DNA from: Octopus bimaculoides
Taxonomy: Eukaryota
Assembly: GCF_001194135.2 (NCBI RefSeq)
Contig: NC_069001.1
Coordinates: 22,771,284-22,805,829, forward strand
Reading direction: 5' to 3'
Length of the DNA stretch: 34,546 bases
Part shown: positions 13,175 to 33,134 of the stretch, one piece after another
Numbering within the stretch: the first letter of the stretch is position 1
Layout: the number at the start of each line of letters is the position of its first letter
Notes under the pieces: generated by a model
Database searches by the model: none
What the model was told of the DNA's origin: nothing
What the model saw: only the letters and a program-made list of their open reading frames with translations
Position numbers and translations under genes: made by a program

Positions 13175-13249
13175 TTGTCATAATAAAACTCAGAGTTTCG
13201 GATGTCAGGGCTGAAGCCTGCTCCAGCATCTCATCAGTTATTAAGACAA
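13175..13249 (-). ncRNA. Type I hammerhead ribozyme, complete core
   Basis: Minus strand: TTGTC t TAATAA | CTGATGA | GATG ctggag cagg cttcag ccctga CATC c | GAAAC tctga GTT | TTATTA t GACAA. Stem I 6+5 bp, stem II present, core CUGAUGA/GAAA intact, NUH=GUU. Confidence 0.8.
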
Positions 13250-14012
13250 AAACAGTATGAAAAAACCGTTGAATAAAGGGTAGTTATTCTAATAGGCATG
13301 GAGAAAGTAAAACTTCGTTCATAGAATCTGCATATGCACACATGTACACATATATACATACATGTACGCACACACACACACACATGTGTATACATATATA
13401 GATACTCACACACACGTGTACATATATACACACACATATATATATATCTATACACATGTAAACATACACACATATATACGTGCATATACACATACACACA
13501 CGTCTATGTTCCCATGCACACGTTATTGTGTTCATGTATACATCTCTATACGCTCATGCACATTCATACACGGATATACCAAGCCACGCATATGCATGTA
13601 TATGTACAAATATGCACACACACACACACACACATACGTATAAATAGGTAGTCAGCATCATCCTCACATAGATATATAGACGTTTATACAAATAAAAACA
13701 CATACACTAAAACATAAACCGTAAACACATTCACATTCACCGCAAAACTTGAATATACATATGAGTTATGTATGTATATGGGTGCATATATATATATATA
13801 TACACAAATACACCCTCCCGTCTGTCAAACACACCTACATCTGCAGATATACAAACGTATATACATACATATATGTATGAGAAAGGAGACAAATAGAACG
13901 GATACAGTCTTTATGCTTATGTTATTTTTATAAAAGTTCAGTTTTTTCTATTATTATATAAGCTTTTTTAAAACTATAAATCAGTCCTCAAATACCATCC
14001 AGACTCTGTATA

Positions 14013-14256
14013 TCATCATCATCGTTTAACATCCACTTTCCATGCTAGCATGGGTTGGACGATTTGACTGAGGACTGGCGAGCCAGAAGGCTGTACCAGG
14101 CTCCAATCTGATCTGGCAGAGTTTCTACAGCTGGATGCCCTTCCTAACGCCAACCACTCCAAGAGTGTAGTGGGTGCTTTTACGTGCCATCGGCACGAGG
14201 GCCAGTCACACAGTACTGGCAACAGCCATACTCACGGTACTGGCAACGGCCACGCT
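14013..14256 (-). mobile_element. Family A retroposon 3' end
   Basis: Close reverse complement of 1-240. Confidence 0.85.
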
Positions 14257-14304
14257 CATATATATATATATATATATATATATATATATATATATTCATT
14301 TATC

Positions 14305-14690
14305 TGTTTCAGTCATTTCACTGCAGCCATGCTAGAGCACTGCCTTTAGTTCGACCCCATGACTTATTCTTTGTGTACCTAGCATTTATTTTATTGGTTG
14401 CTTTTACCAAACCGCTAAGTTACAGGGACGTAAACAGACCAACATCAGTTTTAAGCGATGGTGGGGGACAAACACAGATTCATAAACACATACACACAAC
14501 ACACACACATACATACATATCTATATACGACAGTTTTCTTTCAGTTTCTGTCTACCAAATCCACTCACAAGGCTTTGGACGGCTCGAAGCTATAGTAGAA
14601 GACACTTGCCCAGAGTGTCATGCAGTGGGACTAAACCTGGAACCATTAGGTTGGTAAGCAAGCTACTTACCACAAAGCCACTCTTGCACC
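14305..14690 (-). mobile_element. SINE family B, full length
   Basis: Tail, body and head (CAAGCTACTTACCAC) present. Confidence 0.88.
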
Positions 14691-14825
14691 AATATATATA
14701 TATATATATATATATATATAGGGTGTCTCAGAAAGATTTACTCATCCAGTTCAATATTTAAGAGATGAGGAATTATGTACATTTTTTACATTTGACGGAT
14801 ATTTGTCCTCATCTTCTTTGTTGTT

Positions 14826-14871
14826 AACACAACGTTTCGGCTGATATACCCTCCAGCCTTCATCAGGTGTC
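14826..14871 (-). ncRNA. Minimal type I hammerhead ribozyme, intact core
   Basis: Minus strand GACAC CTGATGA a GGCTG gagggtatat CAGCC GAAAC GTT GTGTT; stem I GACAC/GTGTT, stem II 5 bp, palindromic AACGTT stem III. Confidence 0.78.
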
Positions 14872-14940
14872 TTGGGGAAATTTCGAACCTGGATTCTCAT
14901 TCCTAATGAGAATGAGAACCCAGTATTGAAATTTCCTCAA

Positions 14941-30124: not shown

Positions 30125-30302
30125 NNNNNNNNNNNNNNNNNNNNNNNNNNNNNNNNNNNNNNNNNNNNNNNNNNNNNNNNNNNNNNNNNNNNNNNNNNNN
30201 NNNNNNNNNNNNNNNNNNNNNNNNNNNNNNNNNNNNNNNNNNNNNNNNNNNNNNNNNNNNNNNNNNNNNNNNNNNNNNNNNNNNNNNNNNNNNNNNNNNN
30301 NN
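30125..30302. other. Assembly gap between (GT)n and (AT)n
   Basis: N-run. Confidence 0.99.
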
Positions 30303-31003
30303 TATATATATATATATATATATATATATATATATATATATATATATATGTATGTTTGATATATACGTATGTATACAAATATATATATTTACATTTTTAT
30401 TGTAATGTACTTATATATGCCCGTATATATATACAAAGATATATTCATATGTATAATATATGTATATATATATAATATACATTATATGTTTATATATATG
30501 TACATTCTATATAATATACACACTTTATGTGTGGATATTGAAATACATTTGTATGTATGTATGTATATGTGTGTGTGTGTGTATATATATATATATATAT
30601 ATATTTCCTTATGTATGTATACGGGTATATCTGATATAAAGATTTTTTCTCTCTAATTCTCTTTTCTTTCTGCAAAACATATTGAAAGGGAATGTATTTT
30701 CATAACCTACTTCACACACCAATGAATATCTAATCAAATGTGCAGTACTGGGATTTTTCAAGACTGAATTTACTTAGAAGCACAGACACATACCTATACA
30801 TGTATGCACATGCAACAACATGCAAACATAGTTGCACCGACTTACATAATGCATCCATGTCTCTCTCTATATATATGAATAATACATACCCACATACATA
30901 TCTGTTTGTCTGTCTGTCTATTTATTCATATATATATATATATGCATATATACATAGATATGTATATATGTGTGTGTGTATATATATATATATATATATA
31001 TAT

Positions 31004-31103
31004 NNNNNNNNNNNNNNNNNNNNNNNNNNNNNNNNNNNNNNNNNNNNNNNNNNNNNNNNNNNNNNNNNNNNNNNNNNNNNNNNNNNNNNNNNNNNNNNNN
31101 NNN
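31004..31103. other. Assembly gap (100 N, probably a placeholder size)
   Basis: N-run. Confidence 0.99.
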
Positions 31104-31807
31104 TATAGGGGAGAATTACGATATACCCAAACACACACTGCTACTCATATGCCCACATGTCTGCACGTGCACACACATACACACACACACGCACACACAC
31201 ACATAAATGTGCAAGTATGTATACTGTGTCTTTCTGCTTGCAAATGTGTATATATGGGTTCTTGTCTCTGTAAGATATCCAGTAAATAGATATTATGCAT
31301 GTGTTTAATTAAAAGAAATCTTTGTTGATGCATTTGATTAAAAAGAAAGATAAATCACTACTGAGGCATGCAATCAAGACAGGTCTGTTTCCCCATACAA
31401 CACATGTTTTACCATGATTGGATATTATTGAAACGAACAAAATACACTGTCTCGCTCTCTCTCATCATTCCTCCCACACACACAATCTCCCTTTCTTTGT
31501 CTCGGTCTCTGGCTCTCTCTTGTCATTCAAGAATCTAAAGAGATATGACTGAAAGACGACTTGACCTTCAATATCTCAATCTATCAATCTACAAGAATTA
31601 CTGAAACAACTTTTCTCTGAACAAAGCACCCATCCATAGCACAGCACTCTTATTACACACAGGCACGCATGTACTGTCTCATCCATAACCACTTCCTTCC
31701 TTACCCCTCACCACCCTCCATGCAAGTAAAATTCTCAGTACTATAAAACACATTGTATATTGAGTTATTTGGTGTTGGGTGACATAAAGAAAAAAATGCA
31801 AGATTTA

Positions 31808-31955
31808 ACCATGGTAGCATGGCTGTGTGGAAAGAAGTTTGTTTCTCAACTAGTTCAATCCCACTGCATGGCACCTCAGACAAATGTCTTCTACAATAGC
31901 CACAATCTGACCAAATCTGGAATTTGGAAGACAGAAACTGAAAGAAGCCCAGTGT
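31808..31955 (+). mobile_element. SINE family B, diverged 5' half
   Basis: GCATGGCTGTGTGGAAAGAAG...GTTCAATCCCACTGCATGGCACC...GTCTTCTACAATAGCC. Confidence 0.75.
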
Positions 31956-33081
31956 ATATATATGTTTGTCTTTATGTGTATATGTACACACACACACACA
32001 CACATGCACAAATACACACACATATATATACATGCGTGTGTATGTATATATATATATATATATATATATATATATATATATATATATATATATTGAGATT
32101 TAAAAGCGTAAGATATGCCATACATAATTGAATGGAGGCTTCTAGAACAACCAGGGCCATAGCTCAATAGAAGTAAATGATGCAAGCTTTGCTTGGCTGA
32201 AAGTGCAAAGGTCCTGAAAATCTTACTTGATCCAGGGACCTTCTTAAACTCTAAAAACCAAAAAAGATGTGCTTAGTCAATACCTTCATCAGAGGAAATT
32301 CCTGTTGCAAGCATGAAATTCTTTGTCTGCTGACTAGGAAAAGGCTACCAACTTTGAAAGTCGTTGTGTACATGGATGAAACCAATGTAAGAGGGATAAC
32401 TTCACCTCACCCAACACTTTACTAAGAGAATTTTGTTCCAGGAATTTTTTGCTTATAATATTAATTAATCATAACATTTTCCTCCCTCCAGTTATAGAGA
32501 GACTATGCGCCTCCTGCCATTTGAATCTGAGAAGTCACCTACATAATTAAGTGTTTTATAGGTGTGAAACCAATGGTCACTTTTTGACTGACCATAAAGA
32601 ATGACTGTCTAAATATATGTGCATCTATATATGCACACATATATATATATATATATATATATATACACACACACACACACACACACACACACACATATAT
32701 ATATAAACATGAGTGTGAAGCCATGAAGTCTACAGGCAACCACCCACAGACAAACAATGACATGTTGGTTGTTTAGTTGAAATAAATGAAACCAAGTTTG
32801 TTGAGTGAGGTATCTTTTAAAAAGTCACATGATGAGACACAGCTGCACAGAAGAATGCATTATAAGCAGTTGTATAGTATCTCACCCACAAAGGATCAAT
32901 AGAGGACAGGTTGAAATAATTGTTGTGATTAATAGAAAAACTTGTGAATTCCATTTTCTATTTCTCTCATTTGCTATATATATATATATATATATATATA
33001 TATATATATCCATAGATTTTTATGGTGGAATCATATATACTGACAGAGAATTCAATTCGAAATCTGCTGAAGTCAAGCCAC

Positions 33082-33134
33082 TCCTTACTGATGAGGCAAC
33101 AAAAATTGCCAAAACTGACCAGTGAGTATAAGGA
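33082..33134 (+). ncRNA. Type I hammerhead ribozyme relic (G12>A)
   Basis: TCCTTA CTGATGA GGCAA caaaaa TTGCC AAAAC tgaccagtga GTA TAAGGA; stem I 6/6 bp, stem II 5/5 bp, NUH=GUA; CGAAAC appears as CAAAAC. Confidence 0.72.

Follow-up and report, generated by a model that had tools for sequence, protein, structure and literature searches.

A Penelope-type minimal hammerhead family and its look-alikes in a repeat-rich stretch of the Octopus bimaculoides genome

The stretch of DNA analysed here (the window) comprises 34,546 nt of Octopus bimaculoides contig NC_069001.1 (positions 22,771,284 to 22,805,829, forward strand) and contains several sequences that resemble type I hammerhead ribozymes. At 14772-15040, two 5′-truncated copies of a hammerhead-bearing repeat lie head to head as an inverted pair, with their 3′ ends outward (arms 14772-14902 and 14910-15040). 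One arm carries a minimal hammerhead ribozyme (min-HHR) of the type known from Penelope-like elements (PLEs), with an intact core (14826-14871, minus strand), and the other carries its decayed mirror copy (14941-14986, plus strand). Further hammerhead-like motifs occur at 13181-13243 (minus strand), 26389-26433 (minus strand) and 33082-33134 (plus strand). A sequence-only reading of this DNA had proposed at least four unrelated hammerhead families, of which one could be verified, the motifs at 14826 and 14941 belonging to a single insertion and those at 26390 and 23056 to a single foldback repeat.

Hammerhead-like motifs and their chance expectation

A lenient type I descriptor, which tolerated one unpaired nucleotide beside helix II and accepted either GAAA or AAAA, gave five matches in the whole window, at 13243-13181(-), 14871-14826(-), 14941-14986(+), 26433-26389(-) and 33082-33134(+); a strict type I descriptor gave none. 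The CTGATGA boxes cited in the sequence-only reading are present, and its four main motifs pass the lenient descriptor together with the one at 14941; its motif at 23056 has no CUGAUGA box, and that at 22741, a bare CTGATGA with neither a GAAA box nor a helix II, is due to chance. At 13.2 kb a supernumerary C separates helix II from G12, at 14.8 kb A9 is followed by an additional A, and at 26.4 kb the 3-bp helix II has an additional A on either side; AAAA stands for GAAA at 33.1 kb and at 14941. In terms of catalytic positions, G12 is replaced by A at 33082-33134 and 14941-14986, and a nucleotide is inserted directly 5′ of G12 at 13181-13243 and 26389-26433. The conserved core (C3 U4 G5 A6 N7 G8 A9...G12 A13 A14, with A15.1-U16.1 and H17) is found, with the extra A in addition, only at 14826-14871(-).

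The Rfam hammerhead models, proposed earlier as a check on these motifs, did not bear them out. No match to Rfam 15 was obtained at gathering thresholds in the whole window, no hammerhead was present among the best 150 of 199 matches at E ≤ 10, and none was returned at E ≤ 10 from sub-windows of 100-250 nt around the 13.2, 14.8 and 26.4 kb motifs (141 nt for the last). The best score, 16.7 bits with Hammerhead_3 (E = 0.21 in a 101-nt search), was that of 33082-33134(+), below the gathering score of 48.5. The seeds of these models are dominated by forms with a real helix III, and variants with a 1-bp helix III are poorly represented in them.

The number of lenient matches is high. The five in the window compare with a mean of 0.3 and a maximum of 3 per dinucleotide-shuffled window. 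On the real sequence, permuted-core decoys pass the lenient descriptor at 2.3-2.6% of their occurrences (2.6% for the 629 alternative permutations of the core), vs 5/10 for CTGATGA. CTGATGA boxes themselves are not significantly enriched (10 vs 6.5-6.8 expected; P 0.12-0.17). The enrichment statistic is post hoc, and the window was chosen for its apparent motif enrichment; two of the five matches are the arms of one palindrome and a third has a palindrome-derived stem I. In ten other cephalopod loci (206 kb), 6/130 cores pass vs a background of ∼2.3%, and the elevated density of the window is not repeated there. These loci were reached via mariner-like proteins, and eight of them come from ENA assembly ERZ21867824, which appears to represent a more distant cephalopod and lacks the octopus short interspersed element (SINE); being mostly distant-cephalopod DNA, they constitute a weak control for motif density in octopus.

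The 14.8 kb family

The inverted-repeat search resolved 14772-15040 into 131-nt arms, 92% complementary, around a 7-nt spacer, and self-BLAST recovered the same element (269 nt, 90.7%). Alignment with untruncated copies placed the 5′ ends of both arms at one family position (TTAGGAATGAG), and in each arm the hammerhead lies ∼60 nt from the 3′ end. The motifs at 14826 and 14941 are therefore parts of one 269-bp inverted insertion and not two families. A 3′ extension or "tail" (TCCTCATCTCTTAAATATTGAAC) follows one arm only, at 14749-14771 on the minus strand; it is common to two O. vulgaris copies, as the window sequence 14749-14906 matches positions 18457-18605 and 19447-19560 of an O. vulgaris locus (L004) in BLAST.

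The motif at 14826-14871(-) reads gacac-CUGAUGA-A-GGCUGG-AGGGUAUA-UCAGCC-GAAA-CG-UU/guguu, the slash marking the predicted cleavage site between 14831 and 14830. Metazoan PLE min-HHRs carry an unpaired nucleotide between A9 and G10.1 and conserve the G10.1-C11.1 pair; their helix II is long (6-8 bp), their helix I short (4-5 bp), and a palindromic 15.2-16.2 step stands in for helix III (Cervera and de la Pena, 2014; PMC4209133). Every one of these published features is present at 14826-14871(-), and the family as a whole has the CUGANGA and GAAA boxes, the A9-G10.1 nucleotide, the G10.1-C11.1 pair, a helix II of 6 bp, a helix I of 5 bp and a helix III reduced to palindromic ACGU. The minimal type I architecture with a palindromic stem III, which the sequence-only reading named for Penelope-like elements, is that of this family. 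A strict Penelope-type descriptor coded from the published min-HHR features had two matches in 240 kb, namely 14826-14871(-) and its relative in locus L006 of ERZ21867824, and 179 permuted-core decoys gave no match to it in the same 240 kb. In the mirror motif (14941-14986, plus strand), C11.1-G12 is mutated (CCGAAA to CTAAAA) and the catalytic G12 is lost.

Seven copies are known from three assemblies: the two window arms and five found in fetched loci. Three of the latter are from O. vulgaris (L004 16438-16563, 18457-18605 and 19447-19560, hereafter L004_a, L004_b and L004_c) and two, more divergent, from ERZ21867824 (L006 12766-12883 and L005 996-1079). The family is common: the ∼230 kb of cephalopod sequence sampled contain 7 units, distributed over 4 sites, or 5 units at 3 sites when the window is set aside. 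A peptide translated through the repeat matches one O. bimaculoides UniRef entry, and metagenome pattern scans for the 13.2 and 14.8 kb motifs gave no match. A covariance model of the family (R1) scores 84.6 bits for 14826-14871(-) and 82.7 bits for 14941-14986(+); it recovers solely its own seven copies and is too family-specific to judge other motifs.

The family consensus is ACAC-CUGANGA-A-GGCYGG-AGGRUAUA-UCRGCC-GAAA-CG-UU-GUGUU. In the seven-copy alignment the six fixed core positions show no change, variation being confined to the free N7 (U/A/G); the additional A after A9 is present in 7/7 copies, and helix II is 90.5% paired. The predicted structure as a whole is 81% paired across the seven copies, vs 15-53% when the partners are slid. 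The L006 copy has GGCCGG/UCGGCC where the window has GGCUGG/UCAGCC, which constitutes one compensatory change of U-A to C-G in helix II. The G10.1-C11.1 pair is G-C in five copies and G-U in two after CpG decay, and all losses of the GAAA box occurred at the C11.1-G12 CpG (CCGAAA to CTGAAG, CCAAAA or CTAAAA), which is expected in dead copies given the CpG observed/expected ratio of 0.33. Such a pattern would be expected of a hammerhead that was once under selection. At L006 12780-12835 the hammerhead is fully intact (CUGAAGA-A-GGCCGG...UCGGCC-GAAA-CG-UU), and its presence in a seemingly more distant cephalopod suggests an old age, or else movement between lineages, for the family or its source element.

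At the 5′ side, L004_c starts 8 nt before the core, the window arms start ∼50 nt before it, and L004_a and L004_b are longer; the 3′ part is common to the copies, with the 23-nt 3′ extension in three of them only. Differing 5′ truncation combined with a shared 3′ end points to the behaviour of a retroelement and not to transposition bounded by terminal inverted repeats. In Penelope-type insertions the 3′ end is fixed while 5′ truncation varies, an inverted truncated copy lies alongside, a tail of 30-40 bp is present on one side and a hammerhead is situated near the 3′ end; microsatellites are their preferred target (PMC8557442). The 14.8 kb family has this anatomy, its tail being 23 nt long vs the published 30-40 bp. 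Most published min-HHRs are solitary, and pairs of them lying 100-700 bp from each other on opposite strands have also been reported (PMC4209133), to which the isolated 5′-truncated copies, the opposed pair ∼100 bp apart, the near-3′ motif and the one-end tail of the octopus family correspond. By its motif features the family groups with the minimal hammerheads of Penelope type; of the defining features, only a physical link to a Penelope open reading frame (ORF) was not found. In two respects it differs from the published PLE min-HHRs: no reverse transcriptase (RT)/GIY-YIG ORF or pseudo-long-terminal-repeat (pLTR) arrangement was found beside the seven copies, and the two untruncated copies bear a pol III-box-like head in place of Penelope sequence.

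A mechanism modelled on the published behaviour of the class may account for this anatomy. Helix III would consist only of A15.1-U16.1 around a CG loop, so that a lone motif would be unable to fold productively; two copies on a multimeric transcript could pair via their self-complementary ACGU and form a 4-bp helix III, upon which each would cleave after GUU and trim the RNA to unit length. The unit-length RNA would then be converted to DNA by target-primed reverse transcription at a nicked target, presumably by a Penelope-like RT/GIY-YIG enzyme acting in trans. An early stop of reverse transcription would leave the variable 5′ truncation, and a snap-back or template switch onto the nascent strand would produce the head-to-head pair. 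Dimeric cleavage, mobilization by a Penelope-like enzyme and a snap-back origin of the inversion are all proposed by analogy with the published class.

The copy in the window is itself a relic, a dead insertion, since its plus-strand arm lacks C11.1 and G12, read-through RNA would be locked in a 130-bp hairpin (-203.5 kcal/mol) burying both motifs, and no ORF is present. The kind of retroelement relic that it represents is already known. A 2014 study (PMC4209133) had already described min-HHRs, single or in opposite orientation, that lack a neighbouring Penelope ORF and are massively present in metazoan genomes, and Penelope-type minimal hammerheads were also treated by Lunse, Weinberg and Breaker (2017; cited in PMC6765202). 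No description of hammerheads in octopus, or of the 14.8 kb family itself, was found in the searchable literature, and 235 Rfam Hammerhead_1 loci are listed in the giant squid genome paper. The earlier suggestion of a known class with a possibly undescribed family holds for the 14.8 kb repeat, which adds cephalopods, with a concrete consensus, to the animals carrying Penelope-type minimal hammerheads as abundant solitary relics. Of the non-autonomous, ribozyme-bearing population that had been envisaged, one repeated ORF-less family was recovered; its proposed diversity was not.

Metazoan non-LTR retrozymes, head-to-tail tandem monomers of ∼170-400 nt that yield circular RNA (Cervera and de la Pena, 2020; PMC7229834), are likewise non-autonomous and ORF-less and carry a type I hammerhead. 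In contrast, members of the 14.8 kb family occur scattered, in inverted arrangement or with other SINEs in between (L004_b is 960 nt away from L004_c), and no tandem head-to-tail monomers of the hammerhead unit were found in the window or the loci. Because tandem monomers are lacking, the family is not a retrozyme in the strict sense. It has been argued in a recent preprint that retrozyme-type elements derive from Penelope pLTRs (Li, Clavereau and Pollet, 2026; 10.64898/2026.07.22.740005).

In three of the five Octopus copies, a tRNA-type SINE lies within ∼65 nt after the hammerhead unit and in the same orientation (window 14501-14714, minus strand; L004 16627-16990, plus strand; L004 19152-19443, minus strand). 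This association is commoner than SINE density would predict, and the junctions differ, the SINE being full-length after (TA)n in one case, partial plus full in another and 5′-truncated in the third.

Look-alikes, singletons and alternative readings

The motif at 26389-26433(-) occupies the centre of a foldback repeat (palB, 26224-26636), and its "stem I" (UCUGUG/CACAGA) is formed by the innermost arms of that palindrome. A second member of the family, the 375-nt palindrome palA (22882-23251), was identified by inverted-repeat search, self-BLAST and alignment (A1), the arms being ∼175 nt long with 86-90% identity. In this alignment the centre of palA, which is the motif reported at 23056, reads TCTGTG-TATCGTGAAATAACCCAGAAATCGCGATA-CACAGA and has no CTGATGA, and the left side of palB is altered to TCTGTG-CTGATGAAGG; the symmetric state of palA is more likely the ancestral one. 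Since the catalytic box is missing from the paralogue and stem I is the palindrome itself, the 26390-26432(-) motif is accidental, as is that at 23056, both deriving from one foldback repeat. The A9-side extra nucleotide is present at 26.4 kb, but is spoiled by the extra A on the 3′ side. Placement of this motif inside a gypsy integrase zinc-finger coding region was considered and dropped, as it belongs to the foldback repeat that adjoins integrase-like ORFs. Palindromic repeats of this kind supply a "stem I" free of charge, and the obligatory C11.1-G12 CpG turns dead copies into AAAA forms; both are traps for ribozyme scans in repeat-rich genomes.

The two remaining motifs are singletons. That at 13181-13243(-) reads uaauaa-CUGAUGA-GAUG...CAUC-C-GAAA-cucugag-UU/uuauua, with a helix I composed wholly of A-U pairs, and lies in 171 bp of unique sequence with a microsatellite on each side. 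That at 33082-33134(+) reads uccuua-CUGAUGA-GGCAA-CAAAAA-UUGCC-AAAA-cugaccagugag-UA/uaagga, and an ORF overlapping it has no Pfam match. Both have a 6-bp helix I and a helix II of 4-5 bp, lack the extra nucleotide between A9 and G10.1 and fail the strict Penelope-type descriptor. No second copy of either was found in the window or the 206 kb of loci, and no peptide-level relative. They could be relics or chance.

Taken together, the motifs probably comprise one genuine Penelope-type hammerhead family, represented by the dead insertion at 14772-15040, with foldback by-products at 26.4 and 23.06 kb, a chance box at 22741 and defective singletons at 13.2 and 33.1 kb that are inseparable from chance here. 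Several observations weigh against this interpretation. The Rfam hammerhead models gave no score for the 14.8 kb motif in a 251-nt search at E ≤ 10. Of the stem covariation across copies that the sequence-only reading had called for, one double change in seven related sequences was found, and it is not significant in a column-shuffle control. Published min-HHRs cleave poorly in vitro. The assignment of the family to Penelope draws only on motif architecture and insertion anatomy: no RT/GIY-YIG ORF was found in the window or beside the seven copies, in an insensitive Pfam scan whose composites covered the plus strand. More specifically, no RVT or GIY-YIG match was obtained among the ORF fragments of the window and none is annotated in the fetched loci; the scan used concatenated stop-to-stop fragments and missed a mariner DDE_3 domain that scores 18.8 bits alone. 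The earlier statement that no Penelope ORF is linked to the motifs accordingly agrees with what was seen, true absence being unproven at this sensitivity. Finally, to call the 13.2 and 33.1 kb motifs indistinguishable from chance may be too harsh, as a helix I of at least 6 bp with a helix II of at least 4 bp occurs at 0.17% of decoy cores, and two such cases among the 17 remaining cores have a nominal P of ∼4e-4, a figure inflated by the selection of the window.

This last statistic is an argument for a variant in which the 13.2 and 33.1 kb motifs would be the decayed remains of further Penelope- or retrozyme-type families of lower copy number, the 26.4 kb motif remaining accidental, so that two or three families would be represented. 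The A in place of G12 at 33.1 kb would fit CpG decay of GCCGAAA, this motif has the weak Hammerhead_3 alignment noted above, and both motifs are flanked by microsatellites. Set against this are the lack of paralogues, the additional C on the 3′ side of helix II in the 13.2 kb motif, which is not a described variant, the pure A-U helix I of that motif in AT-rich DNA, the lack in both of the A9-G10.1 nucleotide characteristic of metazoan PLE min-HHRs, and a look-elsewhere effect of window selection. The variant is regarded as rather unlikely.

A more elaborate proposal concerns the element from which the 14.8 kb family derives. An upstream head of ∼80 nt (L004 16043-16123 and 18632-18727) is found in both of the untruncated copies (L004 16043-16563 and 18727-18440), and pol III A-box- and B-box-like motifs can be discerned in it by eye (GTAGTGGTTAAGAGC ... 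AAGTTCGATGCC). The head is followed by an (AAT/AAG/AAC)n linker, extending in the second copy to L004 18605, and in L004_a the head is separated from the body by an unrelated nested repeat of 290 nt. In 240 kb the head was never seen alone, and it is not recognized as a tRNA by ARAGORN or the Rfam tRNA model. The arrangement is suggestive of a composite of SINE type, in the manner of Schistosoma Sm-alpha, for which two copies are too few. Sm-alpha and Sj-alpha, as summarized in PMC6765202, are SINE-like hammerhead retroposons (Ferbeyre, 1998; Laha, 2000), and the octopus unit resembles them in being short (∼330 nt), non-coding, high-copy and retroposon-like, with a putative promoter-like head, bearing A/B-box-like motifs, ahead of a type I hammerhead whose helix III is weak. 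It differs in that its head is known from two copies and is not identifiable as tRNA, in that its hammerhead is of the minimal PLE type with a 1-bp helix III whereas that of Schistosoma is canonical with loop-loop contacts, and in that no tandem satellite arrangement was seen.

In its full form, the proposal would make the family a cephalopod SINE-like element composed of a pol III-type (tRNA-like) head, a microsatellite linker and a Penelope 3′ module with a minimal hammerhead, Penelope-mobilized, numbering ∼10^4-10^5 copies in octopus genomes and of an age that lets a distant cephalopod share it, with the 13.2 and 33.1 kb motifs as decayed members of further such families; it is put forward as a speculative and, in its entirety, unlikely model. 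If head and hammerhead do form one element, it would be the second independent hammerhead-built SINE after Sm-alpha and would provide a handle on the mobilizing enzyme; otherwise the result is a matter of ordinary repeat annotation.

The original proposal, that the four main motifs are relics of four unrelated hammerhead-bearing non-autonomous families in a genome dense with them, now appears distinctly improbable. It can draw on the lenient-descriptor result (5/10 vs 2.3-2.6% of decoys and 0.3 per shuffled window), on the helix combination of the 13.2 and 33.1 kb motifs and their position in short unique stretches beside microsatellites, on the change of G12 to A at 33.1 kb, the same CpG decay as in proven copies of the 14.8 kb family, and on the extreme heterogeneity of published min-HHR families within a genome. 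However, of the two copies of its repeat just one contains the 26.4 kb motif, which owes its stem I to a palindrome, the 13.2, 26.4 and 33.1 kb motifs all fail the published descriptor and the Rfam models, the two singletons are without relatives, the ten other loci show background density, and the statistic is post hoc for a window picked as seemingly enriched.

That 14772-15040 is a miniature inverted-repeat transposable element, a foldback DNA transposon or a hairpin-RNA (microRNA-like) locus with an incidental resemblance to a hammerhead is very improbable. The near-perfect 131-nt inverted repeat with its 7-nt spacer would suit such an element, as would its extreme stability as RNA (a single predicted hairpin of -203.5 kcal/mol, z = -30) and sub-threshold Rfam matches to plant microRNAs (MIR9486, 66 bits vs a gathering score of 100). 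Such microRNA matches reflect any long hairpin, and no copy bounded by terminal inverted repeats was found among the other five, which are single arms and not palindromes, with differing 5′ truncation and a common 3′ end; moreover, the core varies solely at N7, helix II shows one compensatory change and no decoy matched the strict descriptor. The view that all of the motifs, the 14.8 kb pair included, are chance matches to a short degenerate consensus, for which the lack of Rfam support and of significant CTGATGA enrichment might be cited, can be dismissed, as the conservation pattern of the seven-copy alignment, the decoy result with the strict descriptor and an intact copy kept in a distant cephalopod assembly without the octopus SINE make chance untenable for this family.

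Repeats and other features of the window

The window, octopus nuclear DNA by its repeat and peptide matches, is AT-rich (∼35% G+C) and strongly depleted in CpG (observed/expected 0.33), with (TA)n/(TG)n microsatellites abundant throughout. Its most frequent dispersed repeat is a high-copy tRNA-derived SINE (…GGTTCAGTCCCACTGCGTGGCACCTTGGGCAAGTGTCTTCTACTATAGCC…) with a (TA/TG)n tail, present in more than a dozen copies (1451-2026, 5041-5390, 5702-6103, 6313-6460, 14501-14714, 31829-31972, 34226-34496 and others) that amount to about one tenth of the sequence; it also occurs in the O. vulgaris and O. bimaculoides loci and is missing from those of ERZ21867824.

Remnants of DNA transposons include a decayed pogo/Tigger-like ORF at 12122-12517(-) (Pfam DDE_1, 40.6 bits) and three decayed pieces that by eye are Tc1/mariner-like. 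These are 15613-15930(+), without a Pfam match, 18005-18547(+), with a weak DDE_3 match (∼18-19 bits), and 27033-27843(-), in which 27033-27236 has a DDE_3 match of the same weak range and 27277-27579 has no Pfam match. The integrase-like ORFs at 25665-26359(-), directly downstream of palB, contain DSFSKWPE and SNGQAERF and match Pfam rve_3 at 20.4 bits, below the cut-off.

Another abundant repeat, in which a CUGGCGAGCCAG hairpin comes after a CTGAGGA box, is found at 44-239(-), 14012-14234(+) and 21857-22109(+), at L004 16140-16413 and elsewhere; its boxes (175(-), 14068(+) and 21921(+)) were rejected as hammerheads in the absence of a GAAA box. The copy at 21.9 kb lies after ORF fragments at 20.8-21.6 kb that by eye resemble the C-terminal part of a non-LTR reverse transcriptase and have no Pfam match.

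Sub-threshold Rfam microRNA matches (mir-297, mir-466, MIR9486 and MIR319) at 1067-1137, 19722-19808, 14839-14974 and 23009-23119 are products of (TG/TA)n microsatellites and of the two palindromic repeats and not microRNA genes. Five assembly gaps are present (628-919, 4078-4143, 5388-5701, 30125-30302 and 31004-31103), of which the last two fall within (TG)n/(TA)n tracts, the nearest motif being over 1.9 kb away; they are typical short-read assembly breaks and affect none of the motifs. The repeats of the window match sequences on O. vulgaris and O. bimaculoides chromosomes at 72-90%.

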